Notes: generated by a model not told the origin, from the sequence alone. DNA of 64,000 nt from Ylistrum balloti (GCF_031769215.1 NW_026782433.1:310001-374000); one strand, 5' to 3'. Shown: positions 48,762 through 61,772, numbered from the stretch's first letter. Numbers and translations are program-made.

Positions 48762-49868
48762 GTAATTCAGAACAGCCTGGATATTTTCATCAGGGTACGT
48801 TACGCCATTTTGAATACGGACGGCCACTAAACATGTTAAGTTTTATAAGAAGAGGAACTGAGAGATAGAAAGGGTAAGTTAAATCTGGAACCGTAAATGC
48901 TATCATTATTAGATAAGCACCATTTTTCTCGAAATCAAGGCAGATACGTATACTTTAATATAATAGATAGGGTCCAAAGGTTAGGGTTAGCCACTTATAA
49001 CTTAAATTGACAACCGCTGTTGGCCAAACGATTAAATAACACTCCTTCTTTGTGTAATCTAGACCATACTATCACGTCGGATAAGATTAAGACTCTTCAA
49101 GCATTGCAAAAAAGTGTTGACCTTTTCATAGCAGGCTTCGATTTAGTTTGTCATAGACGATGAAGTAATTTGGCCTGAATAAGTGTAATAACATTATGTT
49201 TGTTGTCTTTATGCATCCATGACGACGTGATGTTTTTATCCAAGAGATAAGAAATAGTTTGTAAACTCTTCTAAGTGTATGCTTTATAAACACGTTAATA
49301 TATTTGAACCGCAGTTTTGTCTTTGACTTTGAGTTTCAAATTTTATAATATTATTACTCAGTTTATGAAAAAAGCTCCTAATATGTGTGTGGAAACTTGT
49401 AGAAACCATGCTATACCTAGAACCCAAAGGTAGTGCTAATTGCATGATAGTGTAGAAGAGAAAGGGATGACGAAACTCACTTAATAATATTATGTTCCGT
49501 TTAATCAAAATTGAGAATATCTAATATTAAGACGTATATTTACTGCCGCCCCTCTATACAAGTTAACTAAATTATCTGCTAGTAAAAATGTAAAACCTTG
49601 AGAAACTTATGAAAATAATTGAGTATGCCTCGTCGAAAATGAATATCAATTCCGAATGTTTGTTATCACATTGTTGTATCGTACACTGTTATTGTGTCAA
49701 CAATTACTTTTATCAGTGTTGTTGATAATATATATACATTTGATTCAGTATGTGTCTTCCGCCATCTTGTAAACATGGATGTTATTATGTATATATTTTT
49801 TGTTGTATATTCTATATGCTATGCTACACTTGGAATAAACTGAGCTTGAACCCTGTTTTAAAGCGACG

Positions 49869-52800
49869 ATGGGTGTCGATTTGGCAGTGTACCGTGCACG
49901 GGTAGGCTTATTTGTGCCTCGACCAGTGAATGGTATATTAACAAACATTGGATACCTGTACAAAGCTATCGCCAGTGTCCGGGGAGCCTTGACATGTAAC
50001 AAGATGAACAGAGATGGGGCTGTTCCATTTATTGAACTACTGTTGATGGCACAAGGAATTGAACCTAACCCAGGACCACAAAAGAGAAATCAACAAGTAT
50101 GTTATTTTTAATCTTCTGTCACTTCTAGTTTATGTTTAAGAATTTTTTTTAAAACCAATCATCTGAATGTGTGATTGCCGAGGTCGGTGTAACTTTGATA
50201 AACTTGTGGGAATGCTCGTAAGAAAAACCATGTTGCATTACACAAGCCTTAACATCAAATAAAATGACATCGTAGTAACTTTGTCTACTGTTCTCAAACT
50301 CAAGTATTATATCAGTCATATGGTTTTGTTTTGATCTTTTTTTTCATTGTCGGATACAATGATCGTCACAAGTTCTTATATGTGTGTTACATATACTTAC
50401 AGTCGTCTACAGATGAACAGAGTGAAGACACAGGTGATACTAACATCAGGATGGGTAAATATGTTACATTTACAGTTATATTAGTTACAATTTCATAACA
50501 TACGATATATCACTCTATATTTCATTAATTATGAAATTACAAAAATTTTATATCACCATCTCATTAGCAGCCAGAGGTGGGGGAGGGGAGGTAGGGGGTA
50601 TGTCCCCTGGTACAAATACTAACGACATGGGAATATAGGAGATAATGTAAACAAATCGAGGTTTCCTCTAAATGAATATCAAAAACGACAAATATCGCAC
50701 TACTTTTATCAGATAGAGGCATAATTCATAGGAAGCAATGACTTACTTCGTGTAATTTGCCCTTATTCTGTTGGCATTCACATCGCTCATGAATGCCAAC
50801 TGAAATAGTATCAATGGTTAAATATCATTGATGAAATCGAATCGTTATAAAAGTATATAATTAACGGACAATGTTTCTAAAGGCAATAAAAATCAACTTT
50901 TAAGACTTCTGAAAGGGTAAAACAAATCTATAAAAAAATATCATACTAGCAAAATGGAGGAAAACAAATTATTCTCAGAGCTGAATACACGGCCTGGAAA
51001 TGACTACAGATGACAACCAGGAAACAATCGTTAACAATTCAGTAACATTGTATATAGAATTGCTATTCACTCGTCTTTTGTACAATCCTCTATCGGAATA
51101 AAACTTAATATCTATCAATATGACATTATTTTTATTATTGGATTTTGACAAAGGTCATTATTCATGAATTGCCTTTCACAAAAATGTCATTGTTCGTGAA
51201 TTGCCTTTTACACAAAGGTCCAAAGAAGGCCACGAATTTGTCAATTCATTTACAGAGACAAGCCTTTTATTTTTTGCCATCAGTTTTTCGATAATCAACT
51301 GACAAATTTAGCACAACATCATATTAATATTGTCTTTTTCAATGTTTTTTGGTTTTAAATATTATAAAAGTCGTATTATCGTGAAGGCTCATTGGCTCTA
51401 CTTTTCTCTAGTACAGTAGCTGCATAGTAAAAATTAAAACTGTGTTTGTTTAAAAGACCACTTTCTATCGTATTTATAATTTATCTTGAGTATTGGCATT
51501 TACAAGTGAAGACAAATGTAATTTAAAGACTGAAAGTTTTTTTTTCTGAAAACTTCATTTCAATTTTCACATTTATAATTATCAGGCTTTAACGTAAATC
51601 CAGAAAGTGTTGAGGGGATACGGCAGTTAATGGAGTCTCTACAGCCGATAGGCAATCCTAGTGACCAAGACAGTCCAAATAGTGAGGGTGCAGTTGCAGT
51701 AGCCATACCTGGCCAGTCTGGAGCTGTTGCCATGCCAACTAATGTGACTCCAGGTGATGCATCTAAAATACATAATTTATGTGATGGTATTCAATGTTAA
51801 TCAATAATATTGATAAATAATTTTTCGTATTTATTGTCCGAGTCAGTATTTTTAAAAGTAAAAGATAATGCCGAATTTCAGACAAAAAATTAACTATGAA
51901 GGGTTCTGATTAGCCTCCATTCTGATTAACTGTTATGTATGAAATCGATTATGTCAGTATTGAATTTAATTATAGACGCGTCTTATAGAATTTAACTGGA
52001 ACTACATCTAATCTACAATACCTTTTCAGAGTACATTTTTTTTCTACCCAAATATCGTTTTACGTTTCATATCCATTGTATATGTGTATAAGTACTATGT
52101 AGTTACTCTACCAGACATTCAGTAAGGCATTCTATTACTGATATTTGCTTTTATCTATTTCAATAGGACAATTCTATTTATGAATTAAAACATATATTAT
52201 ATGTCTGTCATTAATATGCCTCTAAGCGGGGAAAACAGTTTTATGATTCAGTTCCAAAGTGTATTACAGGGCATTGGTTAATGTGATCTTGGTTCCGTTT
52301 TTATAGATAGTATCCATATATATATATTTATATCGTAATATCATAGACATGATCGTTCAAATACACAACACCAAAGTAGTAAACAATAAAATAGGAGAAA
52401 TTATATTCCCTGCTTGACTAATTGAAAAATAACACCCACCACCTTATCCCGGGCTTTTTATTTCTAGAATATAAAAAATGATAATGAAATTGAACATTTC
52501 ACTTTTGTTCAGATAGATAAGAAAAGGTAAGGGGTCACCTGCCCGACCACATGGGTTTTCCACAGGTATTCCTGTTTCCTCCCACAATAAGACCCCTTGT
52601 GCGCTATATATATCAGATAGATATGTCTGATTCTAATTTCAAACAAAGGGATAAGCAAGTATAAGTATCTATCTGAGCTGTTTTACGAAAAAAAAATCTT
52701 GGGGCAAGTAGCCAGTTCCTAGTCTTCCACATATCCTTTGAAACTAATAATATAATTGAATTCCTAGTCAATGAGCATGTGAACTACATACGTACATGGA

Positions 52801-55800
52801 GTGTAATGAAATTTTGTTTCATTGTACTACTCAACCAACTTCATTGAAATGGTATTTTAACTGGAATGGACTGTAGAATGTATATGATCAAAGGGAAACA
52901 ACTCATTTAATCTTTGGAACCAAGAGCTCATGTTTAAACACCGTATGTAGAAGACACTTTCTCACAATATTTATCACGTCCATTACATGTCCAAACTATA
53001 ATAAAAAGTCCTCTTCCCCAGATAGGGGTAGGCATTTAGAAGAAATATCTAACAAAATTTTCCAAAAACCTAACTTGTATTGAAAATATCATTATTCACC
53101 TAAACCAATCAGAATCATTTATACATATCCATTTGGGTTAAGAAACGTCCAAGAGTGAAAATATCACTGAGAGATTTTCCAGGTTGATCTTTATATGAAA
53201 AAAGCTCATAATATCAGTACTGATTAAAATTCAGGAGAAACTCAAAATGAGACAGTTAAACAGAACAGTCAGGGCAATTGAGAGTATGTGAGTACTTAAA
53301 CAGAACAGTCAGGGCTATTGAGAGTGTGCGAGTACTGAAACAGAACAGTCAGGGCAATTGAGAGTGTGCGAGTACTTAAACAGAACAGGCAGGGCAATTG
53401 AGAGTGTGCGAGTACTTAAACAGAACAGGCAGGGCAATTGAGAGTGTGCGAGTACTGAAACAGAACAGTCAGGGCTATTGAGAGTATGTGAGTACTTAAA
53501 CAGAACAGGCAGGGCAATTGAGAGTATGTGAGTACTTAAACAGAATAGTCAGGGCTATTGAGAGTATGTGAGTACTTAAACAGAACAGTCAGGGCAATTG
53601 AGAGTATGTGAGTACTTAAACAGAATAGGCAGGGCAATTGAGAGTATGTGAGTACTTAAACAGAATAGTCAGGGCTATTGAGAGTATGTGAGTACTTAAA
53701 CAGAACAGTCAGGGCAATTGAGAGTATGTGAGTACTTAAACAGAACAGGCAGGGCAATTGAGAGTATGTGAGTCCTTAAACAGAACAGGCAGGGCTATTG
53801 AGAGTATGTGAGTCCTTAAACAGAACAGGCAGGGCAATTGAGAGTATGTGAGTACTTAAACAGAACAGGCAGGGCAATTGAGAGTATGTGAGTAGTTAAA
53901 CAGAACAGGCAGGGCAATTGAGAGTATGTGAGTACTTAAACAGAACAGTCAGGGCTATTGAGAGTATGTGAGTACTTAAACAGAACAGTCAGGGCTATTG
54001 AGAGTATAGAGTATGTGAGTACTGAAACAGAACAGTCAGGGCTATTGAGAGTATGTGAGTACTTAAACAGAACAGTCAGGGCAATTGAGAGTATGTTAGT
54101 ACTTAAACAGAACAGTCAGGGCTATTGAGAGTATGCGAGTACTTAAACAGAACAGTCAGGGCAATTGAGAGTATGTGAGTACTTAAACAGAACAGTCAGG
54201 GCTATTGAGAGTATGTGAGTACTTAAACAGAACAGTCAGGGCTATTGAGAGTATGTGAGTACTTAAACAGAACAGTCAGGGCTATTGAGAGTATGTGAGT
54301 ACTTAAACAGAACAGGCAGGGCAATTGAGAGTATGTGAGTACTTAAACAGAATAGGCAGGGCTATTGAGAGTATGTGAGTACTTAAACAGAATAGGCAGG
54401 GCTATTGAGAGTATGTGAGTACTTAAACAGAATAGGCAGGGCTATTGAGAGTATGTGAGTACTTAAACAGAACAGGCAGGGCAATTGAGAGTATGTGAGT
54501 ACTTAAACAGAACAGTCAGGGCTATTGAGAGTATGTGAGTACTTAAACAGAACAGGCAGGGCAATTGAGAGTATGTGAGTACTTAAACAGAACAGTCAGG
54601 GCTATTGAGAGTATGTGAGTACTTAAACAGAACAGTCAGGGCTATTGAGAGTATGTGAGTACTTAAACAGAACAGTCAGGGCTATTGAGAGTATGTGAGT
54701 ACTTAAACAGAACAGTCAGGGCTATTGAGAGTATGTGAGTACTTAAACAGAACAGTCAGGGCTATTGAGAGTATGTGAGTACTTAAACAGAACAGTCAGG
54801 GCTATTGAGAGTATGTTAGTACTTAAACAGAACAGTCAAGGATATTGAGAGTGTGCGAGTACTTAAACAGAACAGTCAGGGCTATTGAGAGTATGTGAGT
54901 ACTTAAACAGAACAGTCAGGGCTATTGAGAGTATGTGAGTACTTAAACAGAACAGTCAGGGCTATTGAGAGTATGTGAGTACTTAAACAGAACAGTCAGG
55001 GCTATTGAGAGTATGTGAGTACTTAAACAGAACAGTCAGGGCTATTGAGAGTATGTGAGTACTTAAACAGAACAGTCAGGGCTATTGAGAGTATGTTAGT
55101 ACTTAAACAGAACAGTCAAGGATATTGAGAGTGTGCGAGTACTTAAACAGAACAGTCAGGGCTATTGAGAGTATGTGAGTACTTAAACAGAACAGTCAGG
55201 GCTATTGAGAGTATGTGAGTACTTAAACAGAACAGTCAGGGCTATTGAGAGTATGTGAGTACTTAAACAGAACAGTCAGGGCTATTGAGAGTATGTGAGT
55301 ACTTAAACAGAACAGTCAGGGCTATTGAGAGTATGTGAGTACTTAAACAGAACAGTCAGGGCTATTGAGAGTATGTGAGTACTTAAACAGAACAGTCAGG
55401 GCTATTGAGAGTATGTTAGTACTTAAACAGAACAGTCAAGGATATTGAGAGTGTGCGAGTACTTAAACAGAACAGTCAGGGCTATTGAGAGTATGTGAGT
55501 ACTTAAACAGAACAGTCAGGGCAATTGAGAGTATGTGAGTACTTAAACAGAACAGTCAGGACTATTGAGAGTATGTGAGTACTTAAACAGAACAGTCAAG
55601 GATATTGAGAGTGTGCGAGTACTTAAACAGAACAGGCAGGGCAATTGAGAGTGTGCGAGTACTTAAACAGAACAGGCAGGGCAATTGAGAGTATGTGAGT
55701 ACTTAAACAGAACAGGCAGGGCTATTGAGAGTATAAAGTATGTGAGTACTGAAACAGAACAGTCAGGGCAATTGAGAGTGTGCGAGTACTTAAACAGAAT

Positions 55801-58800
55801 AGTCAGGGCAATTGAGAGTGTGTGATTACTTAAACAGAACAGGCAGAGCAATCGAGAGTATGTGAGTACTTAAACAGAACAGTCAGGGCAATTGAGAGTA
55901 TAGAGTATGTGAGTACTTAAACAGAACAGATAGACTATGATAGCGCTGATTGCAGTTTCTGCTGTTTGTGTAGGAATCATTGTTGTATTTGAATGTTATA
56001 ATGTGTGGGTGTATATATATATATATATATATAGATGTAACTCAAAGATGCTTTGTGTATCGATGAAATATTTGAAAAGAATAAAATCAACATGACAAAT
56101 CTTTTCCGTTAACAATTTCAGGCCTAACGGTCATCTTCAGGCGATACGATAGCGGAATACGTTTGTCGCGCTGATTTTATTCTTTTCAAACATTTCATCG
56201 ATACATGATATTACGATAACAGGATACACAAATAAGCAAATCTTGATTATTTCCTATGTAATGTTTCAGTGGCTGTCTTCCAATATGTTGACAATCGAAA
56301 CTATAAAGAAGAAATTAATGTTGAAAATATGAAAGTGAAACGCGCTGAGAATGTAAATACTGGAGAACAGACTGTAATCCATGCCGGTGTGTAGATACTC
56401 ATATCATATTGTAATATATATATAGTTATATTATTATAATAATATTATTACAGCGAACCTGTTACAGCTGTCCAATGTTAAATGTATTCAATAATGCTTC
56501 ATAATAACACTTTTACAGCCTAGATCTTTGAATATCAATTAATGCATAATACCTAGAAATTAGTGTTATATGTACCATTATACATTAATGGAGTAATAAT
56601 ATATAAGTATGAATATACTATCACTAAAATTACTACAAGCGGTTCGTCTTTCACTTACAATAAAAGTTTAACTGATGAATTGGTGGTGCTTACAGAAAAA
56701 TATTAAATTTTTACATGTCGTAACTAAGATTTTGATGTTTTTTCAGGACCAGCAAATGGAAGTGAAGTTCATTCCACTCCGAAATTGAAAAAGAAAAGTC
56801 CCAAAAGAATTTTGCTTGAAGGTAATATCAACAAATGAAACAAAATGTATCGTGTATCATGATGGTAGTTATGTCGTATATATAACACCATATCACAAGC
56901 GTGTATCATGATGGTAGTTATGTCGTATATATAACACCATATCACAAGCGTGTATCATGATGGTAGTTATGTCGTATATATAACACCATATCACAAGCGT
57001 GTATCATGATGGTAGTTATGTCGTATATATAACACCATATCACAAGCGTGTATCATGATGGTAGTTATGTCGTATATATAACACCATATCACAAGCGTGT
57101 ATCATGATGGTAGTTATGTCGTATATATAACACCATATCACAAGCGTGTATCATGATGGTAGTTATGTCGTATATATAACACCATATCACAAGCGTGTAT
57201 CATGATGGTAGTTATGTCGTATATATAACACCATATCACAAGCGTGTATCATGATGGTAGTTATGTCGTATATATAACACCATATCACAAGCGTGTATCA
57301 TGATGGTAGTTATGTCGTATATATAACACCATATCACAAGCGTGTATCATGATGGTAGTTATGTCGTATATATAAACCCATATCACAAGCGTGTATCATG
57401 ATGGTAGTTATGTCGTATATATAACACCATATCACAAGTGTGTATCATGTTGGTAGTTATGTCGTATATATAACACCATATCACAAGTGTGTATCATGAT
57501 GGTAGTTATGTCGTATATAAAACACCATATCACAAGCGTGTATCATGATGGTAGTTATGTCGTATATATAACACCATATCACAAGCGTGTATCATGATGG
57601 TAGTTATGTCGTATATATAACACCATATCACAAGCGTGTATCATGATGGTAGTTATGTCGTATATATAACCCCATATCACAAGCGTGTATCATGATGGTA
57701 GTTATGTCGTATATATAACACCATATCACAAGCGTGTATCATGGTAGTTATATAAATAATCCAGGGGTTACATGCCTTTTTCCTTTTATTAATTGTAAGG
57801 AGTTAAATGTTCTACATCATGTTATTGTTCAACATCTCAATAACAAAAACTCTCAATTCCTAGTGCATATATTCAACTCTGGTATCAATTTTCTGTGTTA
57901 GTAAATAAGAGGTTTGTTTTCCTCCAGATAATGCCGAAACAATGTTAAAACGACACATCGAAGAAACAGCCAATATACTGGTCACGAGGACAGCAGCGGA
58001 AAAAGCAGTTGTCGAACGTATAAAGGATTACCATATGGTTGTCATATCTGGAGTAACGGGAGAAGGGAAGACAACTCTGGGTAGAGAAATATGTAAGAAG
58101 TTAAGAGACGGCAACCTTGACGAATCTATCAATTGTAAAACACCCGTACTTATCACAGTTCCACAGGACTGGAGTGACGTCGTCAATGACAAAGATGATA
58201 TCGTAGTATTTGTAGATGACATATTTGGGAAAACCAACTACCAGACAGGGCTTTTGAATGGATGGTCACCATTTTTTGATAGAATATTACAATGTTTACA
58301 CAAGGGTAATGTTTGTTTGGTAATGACTTCTCGCACGCATATACTTAAAGATGCCAGGCGAGAATCAGGTGTATTGAGCGAAATGATAAGTGACCATATT
58401 CTCTCTGAAAAGAAAACCGTAGATTTGACTGTCGACCACAAATTAACATATAACGAACGTTTAGATATCTACAATAAGCATTCTAATCAACGACAGGCTG
58501 GCGGGCACGTTATGTCTACCATGCTCCTTACATATCATGAAATTCGTCGCTTTCCGTCAAATATTTCTATAGGTTTTGCTCAAATTTGTAATCTCTTCTT
58601 TACCAATGACACATTTTTTGAGAAAGGGGAAAAGTTTTTCAGAAATCCTCTCCGAATGCTCACGGAGGAGATAGAGAGAATGAGACTCACTGAACCTCAC
58701 AAGTACTTTGCGCTAGTATATTGTTTCCTTAATGACCAAACCCTAGATAGCAGAAAGCTAAATCGTCTAAAAATGGAAAAAGATGATTATGAGAATTTGA

Positions 58801-61772
58801 AGGTATTAGCAGAGGTTTGTGGCGTCATACATACTGGAAATGTATTGGCAATGCTCAAAGACGGACTGAATGCACTAGATAGAACATATCTAACCAGACA
58901 AAATACAGTGTTCACTTTTGGTCACCAATCAATTGCAGACAGCGTTAGTCTTGTCTTCGGAAAAGAAAACCCAGAATTGATTTTGGAAAAGTGTAGCAAC
59001 CGTGTGATATTGGAACAGCTTGATGTTTCGGGAGCTGAAAAACCTGATATGTGTACATTGCACGTGCCTCCCGATAGCTTCCATCATCTTGTAAAACGAA
59101 TGTGCAAGATGATTTTGGAAGACAATGATTACAATCGAATAACATTAAAATCATTCCCAAGGTTCCGTAATCAAAAGTTTGCGGATTGTCTTTTTGAGTA
59201 CATCACCACCACACACGACGTCGCAAAAGGCTTCCTCAGGGCTAATTCTACTTTATTAGACTCTTGTGAAAACAATGTCTTCTTTCTGCGATCATATTTT
59301 AAGTTCAAAGTTGATGAGCTCACTGTCAAAGAGAACGGTATTTTAGCCTTCACAAGAGCGTTACAAAGAACTCTGATGTCATCTCTGGAACATAAAAACA
59401 CAGAATCAATGTCGATTCTGCTGAGCAATGGAGCATTTTGCACTACAAAATGTCTTCAATTAGCAATTAGTTCAAACGATGTCAATTTGGTAGAGTTTGT
59501 GTTGTCAAAGAATACCTGGACAAAGTCTGAAGTCAATGAGACTATCAGCGACAACACTCCAGGTGACTTGTGTGATACTCTTGAGAGGACGGCAAGTATG
59601 TGCAAAGTACAATTGTTATGGAGTCAATATAAACAACAAAAAACATACATGATAGAGAAAATAAAAAATCTCTCCAATTGGAGTCCTAAAGACATGGCAA
59701 AATCTGCAGAGAAAATGGACTTTGACTCATTACATGCTATATTTCAGACTTGTGAATTGCAGGAGCATTACTATCATCTGTTTGAAATAATATTGAACTC
59801 AAAACATAAGAGATTAAGTGACGCTATTGCAGTTAAAAGGATATTGGGACACATGGACGGGGGAATAGTGAAACGTGCTTTACAAAGTTGTAATTTGGAC
59901 ATATTTCGTTTTTTACTTTTCTCGTCAAATGTAGATACAGCGCAACTAAACTCGATGGTGTCCGAAGCCATACATCTTAACAAAACAGACCATCTAGAAG
60001 TTCTAATCAAAGCAGGTGGGCAACCGTCTCATGATGCCTTTGTGAGAAAGGCAGGAACGAATTTCGTGGGAGTTGAGGATGTTGTTGGAACGATAATGGA
60101 AACGGTGTCTTGGACACAAACACAGCTTAATGATGCACTAGACGAAGCCATTAAGTCAGGTTCATATGCGTCCATAAAAATCCTTTTTGAAGGTGGAGCA
60201 CGGTTTATGGCAGATGCATTGGTAAATGTATCCAAACGACAGTATGATCCACTGATAATAAGTGAAGAAGAAATGACTTTTGAAGAAGAGCTCCAACTCC
60301 TTATTGAAATGTTAAATGGAAATAAAAAAGAAGAAGAAGAAAATGTTCCTGTTACAGTTTCATTTGTTTTCTCGAAACATAAATGGGTACCAAGACAGAT
60401 TACTGAAGCACTTAATGTTGCAGTGGAATGGGGACCACTTGGAACAGTGAAGTTTCTGGAGAACAATGGAGGAACTTTCCAAAGCGGTGCACTGTTAGCT
60501 GCAGTAAGAAGGACACGTGATACACTCAAAACTGTTAAGTTTGTGAGAAAGTCAGAGAAATGGTCAGTAGACCAACTAAGCGATGCCTTACACGAGTCTT
60601 TAGTCCTTTGTAGGTCTGATGTTGCTCTGTACTTATTTACTATGGGAGGACAGTTCAATGATTCGAGTTTATTGAATGTTCTTGGATGGCATGTTGAACA
60701 TCATGTTCAGATAAGGCTCTTGAAGATCATTCTTCTATCTCGTACATGGTCACCTGATTTGCTTGCTGAAGCCATTCAATTTGCATGTGAAACAAATGGC
60801 CCTTCAATCTACGCAATTTTGGGTGTTCCGGAAATATCAGGAATACTTGACAAAGATATTCTATTAAACCTACCAGAGGTTCAAGAGTTAAAGAAAACAA
60901 AAATACAGTTTTTGAAATGTGAAGGTATGACAGATGAGCTTACAATAGTCTTGAATAAGGAAATAAAAGAAGGTTGCATAGATATCGTTGAACACCTCAC
61001 TCGCGAGATGAATATTCCATGCGACAATGACAGCTTATCAAATGCTATGGATAACACTCGGAACTACCAGAGCTACAACAGACTGAAAATGGTCAGCCTA
61101 GTGCAGGAATCAAGAGACTGGTCGGATGACTTGCTGATGAAGGCGTTGGACAAAGCTGTGAAACTTGGGTATACTGATGTGATATTCTACTTACATGATC
61201 ACGGAGCCATGTTCAGTGACCAAAGTCTAGAGTACGCCATTGTTGATAAAAATATGGCGTATGATACGTACGGTTTAGTGATTTATATGATGAAGTCCCG
61301 TCAGTACAATAAACAGCAGATGGACAATGCCTTACAGAAGTCTTTAGAAGTTGGACATTTTCAGCTCGTATCCATGTTTCATGAAAGAGGAGCAGAATTT
61401 ACAGGCAAAAGCCTACAGAACGCTATTCATAAAATGTGGAAAACAACCGAAAGGCTTCCAGCAGTACAGTTTGTATTGAGGGCAAGGGAGTGGGATGCAA
61501 TTGAGAAGAACGACGCCCTGTTGAGCGCTGTAAGATTAGGTGATGTAAGAGTTATTGGTTGTCTTCTCAGATGTGGAGGAGAAGTTTCCAACCGATGTTT
61601 GTCAGAAATTCTACATAAGAAATGTAAACCATCTCACCGCCTGTCTATCATCAGACTCCTTCTCTCTGGTTCCACTTCTCTGTCACAGGAACTACTTAGA
61701 AATGCGTTGGAAAAGGCTAGAAAACTGTCGGAACCTAAAGTCGAAGAATACATCCAACAGCTTGTGTGTTAG
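49869..61772 (+). CDS. NLR-like STAND NTPase (nSTAND3-type) with N-terminal 2A-like and RHIM-like motifs and C-terminal ankyrin-like repeats, ~1494 aa, 6 coding exons
   Basis: Exons 49869-50096 (phase 0), 50403-50454, 51586-51753, 56270-56386, 56747-56821 and 57928-61772 (all later junctions phase 1) splice into one open frame of 4485 nt. Walker A GVTGEGKT (58050-58073), Walker B IVVFVDDIFG (58200-58229), sensor CLVMTSR, then helical domains and ankyrin-like repeats. Confidence 0.85.
52530..52600 (+). mobile_element. SINE central-domain fragment (opposite orientation to 19925-20020)
   Basis: gggttttccacaggtattcctgtttcctcccacaataagacccc resembles the SINE core ttttctccgggtactccggtttcctcccac. 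Confidence 0.45.
53255..55928. repeat. 40-bp minisatellite, ~66 copies, intron 3 of the STAND gene
   Basis: Unit acttaaacagaacagtcagggctattgagagtatgtgagt, seen directly as a 40-nt period. Confidence 0.97.
56056..56205. repeat. Fold-back element (MITE-like) with 44-bp inverted arms
   Basis: tgtatcgatgaaatatttgaaaagaataaaatcaacatgacaaa (56056-56099) pairs with 56162-56205 with four mismatches. Confidence 0.85.
56850..57745. repeat. 49-bp minisatellite, ~18 nearly identical copies, intron 5 of the STAND gene
   Basis: Unit cgtgtatcatgatggtagttatgtcgtatatataacaccatatcacaag. Confidence 0.97.
57928..61772 (+). CDS. Terminal 3.8-kb exon of the STAND gene: NTPase domain plus ankyrin-like repeat array
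   Basis: 1276-aa ORF in the track. The acceptor TTTTCCTCCAG at 57927 is in frame with it. The VVFVDDIFG Walker B and hhhTSR sensor are typical of the nSTAND3 family seen in bivalve proteins (recalled, not searched). Confidence 0.93.

Follow-up and report, generated by a model that had tools for sequence, protein, structure and literature searches.

A stretch of 64,000 nucleotides from the scallop Ylistrum balloti (GCF_031769215.1, NW_026782433.1:310001-374000), referred to here as the window, contains at positions 49869-50096 an exon that appears to be a leader cassette domesticated from a non-long terminal repeat (non-LTR) retrotransposon. This exon carries a 2A-like motif predicted to direct StopGo, the skipping of a peptide bond by the ribosome, and it heads an NLR-like protein with an nSTAND3 P-loop NTPase and ankyrin repeats. 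The probability of this reading is put at about 0.6, and skipping is the part of it that we infer. According to the proposed mechanism, during decoding of ...LLLMAQGIEPNPG-P the Gly69-Pro70 bond would be blocked by two features of the nascent chain in the exit tunnel, its Leu-rich helix and the G-I-E-P-N-P-G core, and the 69-residue leader peptide would be released. Some ribosomes would continue and produce an NTPase-ankyrin protein with an N-terminal proline (PQKRNQQ...), and others would read through, giving the leader-fused protein, or drop off. The net result would be that the leader is removed co-translationally and that less is made of a STAND/death-type immune protein with dangerous potential. 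The leader probably supports some measurable StopGo; its efficiency and its role as a throttle are put forward as conjecture. The features of the leader exon are the following, with a slash marking the predicted skipped bond.

49869..50096, plus strand: coding part of exon 1, a 76-codon leader from M1 to Q76 with a phase-0 end, conserved in two paralogs with a dN/dS (ratio of nonsynonymous to synonymous substitution rates) of 0.26
49869..49916, plus strand: N-terminal box (N-box) MGVDLAVYRARVGLFV, family consensus MGVDxxxYRxRIGxF, with invariant or near-invariant columns, a dN/dS of ~0.06 and counterparts in the leaders of long interspersed nuclear elements (LINEs)
50016..50078, plus strand: 2A-like element, G50-P70, formed by the predicted helix FIELLLMA and then the core QGIEPNPG/P, recognized by motif, family alignment and AlphaFold2 helix
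50073-50075 and 50076-50078, plus strand: G69 and P70, with the predicted skipped bond between them, within the 2A-like element
50097..50098, plus strand: GT splice donor of intron 1, identical in position and phase in all three copies

Positions 49869-50096 form a coding exon that opens with an ATG and runs through 76 codons without a stop; its translation starts with MGVDLAVYRARVG and ends with FIELLLMAQGIEPNPGPQKRNQQ. Its terminus reads ...FIELLLMAQGIEPNPG/P, followed by six further codons and the GT donor, with the core GIEPNPGP (G63-P70) at 50055-50078, and its ATG lies in a context with A at -3 and G at +4. The reading frame closes 5 codons beyond the donor, and no continuous open reading frame (ORF) leads into APE endonuclease and reverse transcriptase (RT) sequence. 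The degenerate DNA pattern for ExNPGP matched once in the 64-kb window, against 0 matches in 100 dinucleotide shuffles. Translation and shuffles thus bear out what an earlier sequence-only reading by a model had claimed, that a 2A-like motif closes a 70-residue N-terminal leader; the motif is real and beyond chance.

With P70 counted as +1, the element combines features of two classes of 2A peptides. As in class A, it ends in NPG/P, with E at -5 and V/I at -6 (I64-E65-P66-N67-P68-G69-P70), behind a helical Leu-rich tract, FIELLLMA, in which L58 and L59 are invariant or nearly so and which places LLL at -13 to -11; at -7, where class A has Asp (DxExNPGP), the scallop element has G63. As in class B, the core follows the form G-I/V-E-P-N/H-P-G-P (GIEPNPGP), and the invariant Trp that class B carries in strict register at position 16 is missing, I55 standing at 16 and F54 at 17. 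Judged from its sequence, the scallop element is a hybrid: a Leu helix of class A type precedes a class B core, and the class B Trp is lacking. AlphaFold2, run on the family alignment presented below, places helices at residues 5-12, 26-43 and 48-61, the last with a predicted local distance difference test (pLDDT) score of ~72-78, in a leader model of low confidence (mean pLDDT 63.6) that was used solely for this helix call.

No Pfam family matched the leader, and a feature-based search of the ESM Atlas with it returned no usable match. Since Pfam left the leader unexplained, a three-leader profile was run against 1.84 billion representative proteins, which gave 43 matches at E <= 0.001, and the family alignment was assembled from 31 full-length N-terminal leaders. 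Ten residues are invariant in 31/31 sequences, namely M1, Y8, R9, L59 (-11), G63 (-7), E65 (-5), N67, P68, G69 and P70 (+1), and G2, V3, D4, R11, G13, G50, F54, I55 and L58 are conserved in at least 90%, with no conservation beyond P70. The family is therefore built on two boxes, MGVDxxxYRxRIGxF at the N-terminus and FIxxLLxxxG[IV]ExNPGP at the 2A end, with variable sequence between them. The conservation of ExNPGP among orthologs and paralogs to which the sequence-only reading had looked is present in 3/3 genome copies and in 31/31 family leaders.

All named members belong to bivalves, namely the scallops Ylistrum, Mizuhopecten, Pecten and Argopecten and the clams Ruditapes, Mercenaria and Mya, and the family has so far been found only in this group. 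The bodies behind the leader are diverse: nSTAND3 with ankyrin repeats (P0001, P0004, P0002 and P0019), PARP14-type RRM repeats (P0011, P0036, P0041 and P0014), a Death domain (P0020 and P0033), immunoglobulin (Ig; P0006), and a weak SLOG/TRPM-like match (P0023). The leader opens annotated proteins in seven bivalve species, and in four of them (Ylistrum, Mizuhopecten, Mercenaria and Ruditapes) it is fused within one model to an nSTAND3 or PARP14-type RRM body; the RefSeq models with leader and NTPase in one protein are P0001, P0004, P0045 and P0019. In addition, intron-free contigs of ~1.4 kb from five runs (L159-L162; SRR127378xx) comprise a 5' untranslated region, a 386-codon ORF of leader plus PARP14-type RRM and a 3' AATAAA, and their layout looks like that of mRNA. 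The literature searched contained nothing specific on a bivalve leader of this kind, with incomplete coverage that makes this weak evidence of novelty.

The G at -7 had been regarded by the sequence-only reading as a replacement of the conserved D that might leave skipping partial or absent; the idea of a degenerate replacement did not hold up. Besides matching the class B sequence EGIEPNPGP, this G is invariant in 31/31 leaders, and -7GxExNPGP+1 is named as a recognized non-canonical core among functional 2A peptides in PMC13405545; on these grounds G(-7) is best read not as a degenerate substitution or decay. Class B viral 2As with the core EEGIE-P-(N/H)-PGP reach skipping of up to ~80%, and the N-terminal Pro of their downstream product has been sequenced (Rao et al. 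2025, PMC12338488).

The same core recurs in viruses. A scan of IMG/VR for G-[I/V/M]-E-P-N-P-G-P, reported here for the matches listed, found at least 143 sites in at least 120 viral contigs, and 142/143 listed sites lie in an open frame. Among the listed contigs the median length is 4.8 kb, and at least 17 of them carry 2-4 sites; by our own rough, uncomputed estimate, chance would presumably yield a few tens of sites at most, unclustered. Most listed sites are class B-like (W..DLT.EG...), and some have scallop-like Leu-rich tracts, such as ...LLLMSGIEPNPGP. Five matches of the leader profile itself carry 2-4 such sites and have no Pfam match of their own. The two-ORF contigs of ~5.5 kb retrieved for P0018 and P0030 contain 3-4 LLxQG[IV]EPNPGP sites, with sub-threshold matches to RNA-dependent RNA polymerase in ORF2, for which no PDB match was obtained. 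In the two-ORF contigs from a Logan run and JGI metagenomes (L036, 5603 b; L037/L038, ~5366 b), ORF1 of 1113-1180 aa has no Pfam match and bears 3 sites of the form LLxxG[IV]E[PM]NPGP, and ORF2 has RNA-dependent RNA polymerase matches below threshold. The multi-2A contigs probably belong to unclassified RNA viruses employing the G(-7) 2A core.

Several observations weigh against skipping by the scallop leader or against its place in the host gene. Substitution of D(-7) (D12A) abolishes activity in F2A (foot-and-mouth disease virus) and P2A contexts (10.64898/2026.09.24.754024). Class B activity requires Trp at position 16 in strict register (PMC12338488), which counts against the scallop element because it has Ile at 16 and Phe at 17. 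Several non-LTR 2A-like sequences with near-canonical motifs were inactive in vitro (PMC3708506), and a Leu-rich eukaryotic peptide with G(-7) (…IGGVEMNPGP) gave the upstream product alone ("falloff") in human cells (PMC13405545). On the side of the host gene, the putative intermediate exons of the model described below were placed solely from splice sites and weak similarity.

The falloff result is what would be expected of a pure translational attenuator, in which most ribosomes would stall or terminate at G69 with no productive restart, so that the leader would act much like an upstream ORF and functional protein would arise solely by rare read-through. The same source describes eukaryotic Leu-rich 2A-likes, including poly-Leu ones, as often lowering protein abundance and as enriched in death-domain and ankyrin proteins (PMC13405545), and the LLL at -13 to -11 of the scallop helix points in the same direction. 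However, P(+1) is invariant in 31/31 leaders, translation resumes after the matching class B core, where the N-terminal Pro has been sequenced (PMC12338488), and viral polyproteins that carry this core require restart, which makes an attenuator of this kind unlikely.

The absence of D(-7), with the loss of F2A and P2A activity in D12A mutants, also favors the view that no recoding takes place and that the leader is an ordinary fused N-terminal domain, with, for instance, a helix that binds membranes or a partner, or an MG- start that is myristoylated, in which NPGP is kept structurally or by LINE inheritance. Consistent with this, the N-box is as strongly conserved as the 2A box, the MG start is nearly invariant, and clam relatives have a transmembrane-like stretch of 15-19 uncharged residues. 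Yet the invariant residues are exactly the E, N, P, G and P that StopGo requires, across Pteriomorphia and Imparidentia, with variable flanks, and viral polyproteins use this core repeatedly; moreover, the clam start GVDIQT misfits the myristoylation pattern. We know of no other function for an NPGP-type motif. An ordinary fused domain is thus considered rather unlikely.

The sequence-only reading had also proposed that the exon derives from a retroelement and that the leader be compared with LINEs and other genes; such comparison found, besides the several bivalve immune families described above, leaders of APE- and RT-encoding ORFs. A search of the Ylistrum balloti genome with the 31-sequence leader profile returned the three host copies and many others. 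A group of six (L007-L012) aligns with profile positions 1-73 at E ~5e-6, starts with MLISLQLHRARIGLFN and reaches ...LLLIISGNIEINPGP at residue 73; leaders of this type open with an M..L..HRARIGLF box and carry the 2A motif at the same distance from the start as the host leader. In a full-length copy (L034), the leader opens a 1145-codon ORF with APE endonuclease and RT domains. A second LINE group has MPVNIELYRARIGSYY ... AGDVAENPGP upstream of an APE domain. A degraded single-copy non-LTR element (L163; G000:C310:312700-319700) has the leader MGVSVEAWRDRIGEF (MGVS...WRDRIGEF) ... SGDIECNPGP, which continues into a coiled-coil ORF1p-like protein, with APE and RT fragments following; by eye, without a score, it looks the most host-like of the LINE leaders examined, sharing the MGV start.

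Direct comparison of host and LINE leaders with hhalign gave a probability of 98.5% and E 3.8e-15 over 68 columns, and the single boxes reached 97.4% (N-box alone) and 96.7% (2A box alone); these pairwise values are optimistic because the LINE leaders were picked by the same profile, and the genome-wide E-values (~5e-6) are the safer figure. In the genome search, leaders with both boxes scored ~36 bits, versus ~25 bits for the 2A box alone. Homology over both boxes to leaders of APE/RT LINEs in the same genome supports a retroelement origin of the leader. The profile alignment sets host G(-7) opposite the G that precedes the D/N of LINE leaders; the host family thus looks like a LINE leader minus D, with the residue missing rather than replaced. 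On the same hhalign pairing, a D-to-G point substitution was rejected and loss of the D preferred. The simplest history would be that the 5' end of a LINE was captured and became a first exon, the direction of transfer being presumed.

Within the genome, the host-type leader exists in three copies: that of the window, a tandem copy 19 kb downstream on the same contig, C576 (71% identity), and one on contig C770 (57%). QGIEPNPGP is kept in 3/3 copies through differing synonymous codons, the phase-0 GT donor is likewise kept in 3/3, and DNA similarity among the copies runs from the ATG to the donor and no further. Between the window and tandem copies, dN/dS is 0.26 at a dS of 0.77, with ~0.06 for codons 1-18 and 0.22 for codons 50-70, a pattern indicating that the leader exon is under purifying selection. 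The three closest nSTAND3-ankyrin paralogs each have one of these leaders 8-15 kb upstream on their own strand; no such leader was found upstream of the more distant nSTAND3 genes of the genome (<=27% identity). As a separate observation, the tandem paralogs (57942-59141 and G000:C576:389920-391101) share 93% identity across the NTPase region, taken as the first 394-400 residues encoded by the large exon; set against 71% in the leader, this suggests that either the 3' exon has undergone gene conversion or the leader has evolved faster.

These copies also bear on whether the exon could be just a dead LINE 5' end that sits in front of a gene unrelated to it, outside the nSTAND3 transcript. The leader is indeed homologous to LINE leaders, a dispersed repeat abuts it, and the one sequencing run located for this species is not recorded as RNA. 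Nevertheless, no APE or RT follows it, its donor and phase are conserved in three copies that each stand upstream of a closest paralog, dN/dS is 0.26, only 3 host-type copies exist versus many LINE copies, and leader-headed proteins are annotated in seven bivalve species, four of them with a one-model immune body. A dead LINE end is accordingly regarded as extremely improbable, and a domesticated cassette that heads the host gene is retained.

The predicted gene that begins with the leader exon encodes an nSTAND3 P-loop NTPase and ankyrin-repeat protein of ~1463 aa, with putative middle exons. Its large 3.8-kb exon starts ~7.8 kb downstream of the leader, with an acceptor AG at 57926-57927, and the exon phases 0, 1, 1, 1 give an uninterrupted frame of 1463 codons in the model. 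A guide to this structure is P0001, the Ylistrum balloti RefSeq protein XP_060078365.1 found in the leader profile search: its residues 239-1523 are 73% identical to the large exon of the window, and over its first 76 residues it has the exact sequence of the tandem leader copy, 19 kb downstream of the window copy. The remaining features are as follows.

50403..50454, plus strand: putative exon 2, an acidic linker, phase 0 to 1, proposed from AG/GT sites and phase continuity
51604..51753, plus strand: putative exon 3, phase 1 to 1, with a weak tblastn match to P0001 residues 111-143 (E 0.035) and splice sites
56270..56386, plus strand: putative exon 4, phase 1 to 1, with a tblastn match to P0001 residues 152-178 (E 7e-7) and splice sites
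57928..61772, plus strand: last exon, with the nSTAND3 P-loop NTPase (~57990-58484; PF20720, E 4e-27), a long helical/ankyrin-repeat region (Ank_2, 6e-9) and the stop codon
49200..49851, no strand assigned: dispersed repeat ending 18 bp before the leader ATG, found at 20 further genomic sites with 66-82% identity, most of them inverted relative to it

Putative exon 4 has 117 nt and symmetric 1-1 phases, and could be skipped without a frame break. The repeat at 49200-49851 is absent from the upstream regions of the paralogs, whose homology starts at ~49851, and a promoter or ISRE/kB interpretation of the interval should allow for its repeat nature. Two satellites occupy intronic sequence, one at 53256-55901 (40 bp x 66 copies, 94% matches), which accounts for a GC-skew spike at 54-56 kb, and another at 56851-57743 (49 bp x 18 copies, 98% matches).

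As for localization, the sequence-only reading had suggested that the leader could target the uncleaved protein to another compartment, and dual targeting is indeed known from Strongylocentrotus purpuratus NLRs (PMC4981915); applied to the scallop, unskipped protein would enter the secretory pathway or an organelle and skipped protein would remain cytosolic. A net leader charge of +3 and the transmembrane-like pre-2A helices of clam relatives would be compatible with such a role. In the window copy, however, the best 19-residue Kyte-Doolittle value is only 0.94 (0.4-1.2 across all scallop copies), the pre-2A helix, which carries E, D, Q or R in scallops, is here interrupted by E and Q, the hydrophobic part lies at residues 50-62 rather than at the N-terminus, and the leader measures 70 aa versus 26 aa for the sea urchin signal peptide. 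Signal-like dual targeting is thus not supported for the window copy, and as a general explanation of the leader it is distinctly improbable. In clam members the same segment comprises 15-19 uncharged residues with Kyte-Doolittle values of 1.8-2.5, and their leaders could be membrane-active; given these hydropathies and charges, a sea urchin-like signal role seems unlikely in scallops and possible in clams. The conserved D4 argues weakly against a mitochondrial presequence. N-myristoylation was considered and not adopted: the scallop start GVDLAV presumably fits the PROSITE myristoylation pattern, and the clam start GVDIQT lies outside it.

A wider evolutionary scenario can be offered tentatively, at somewhat under even odds. 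The cassette, formed by the N-box and the G(-7) 2A, may have been captured as a 5' exon early in bivalves and then exon-shuffled, or repeatedly captured, onto unrelated immune families, where it would act as a shared co-translational switch. This switch would set the amount of effector and the retention of the leader in nSTAND3-ankyrin NLR-like, PARP14-like, Death-domain and Ig proteins.

The likeness to sea urchin NLR-like proteins noted in the sequence-only reading proved apt, given that the exon leads an nSTAND3-ankyrin gene. N-terminal 2A-like leaders on invertebrate NLRs have one experimentally studied case, SpNLR2A of Strongylocentrotus purpuratus (Roulston et al. 2016, PMC4981915), which, like the scallop leader, has an NPGP motif at the extreme N-terminus of a STAND/NLR immune protein of a marine invertebrate and occurs on a subset of an expanded gene family. 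The SpNLR2A leader has 26 aa, a predicted signal peptide and a canonical DVExNPGP, whereas the scallop leader has 70 aa, a second, N-terminal box and a G(-7)/P(-4) core, lacks signal-like hydrophobicity, occupies its own exon and precedes an nSTAND3 instead of a NACHT NTPase. In non-LTR APE-type leaders (Odon et al. 2013, PMC3708506), as in the scallop, 40-80 aa separate the 2A from the ORF start, and mollusc examples from CR1 and Ingi showed activity in vitro (PMC3708506). Unlike those leaders, the scallop leader has an intron and a host immune gene behind it rather than APE/RT, exists in 3 copies, is under purifying selection, and lacks the D/N that LINE copies have at -7.

With class B viral 2As (PMC12338488), the scallop element shares an identical core, G-[IV]-E-P-N-P-G-P, and Leu at position 12 (terminal Pro = 1), and differs in lacking Trp 16 (Ile 16, Phe 17) and in having a Leu-rich upstream tract as in class A. 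The eukaryotic 2A-likes covered in the available text of PMC13405545 are, like that of the scallop, N-terminal and Leu-rich, occur on autosomal immune-type or ankyrin proteins of marine invertebrates and are proposed to regulate expression; that portion of the text names no bivalve species and contains neither a two-box leader nor LINE homology. What is added to the known invertebrate NLR 2A leaders is a leader of two boxes and 70 residues that occupies a separate exon, a family-invariant non-canonical core matching active viral 2As, homology to LINEs, and a presence on several immune families.

For the annotation of these genes, the mature proteins of leader-headed genes may start with the proline that follows the predicted skipped bond rather than with Met1. 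Because it combines several immune families with a mixed class A/B core, the family offers a natural test case for what skipping requires as opposed to throttling, and for StopGo control of STAND and death-fold proteins. The sea urchin authors considered the origin of their 2A not resolvable, the motif being too short (PMC4981915). Since the bivalve leader has two boxes ~50 residues apart, long enough to show LINE homology, it provides a concrete route from retrotransposon to host gene. If the wider scenario of cassette capture is true, this would be the first statistically shown homology between a 2A leader of a host gene and the 2A leaders of retrotransposons, going beyond a guess based on an 8-residue motif.

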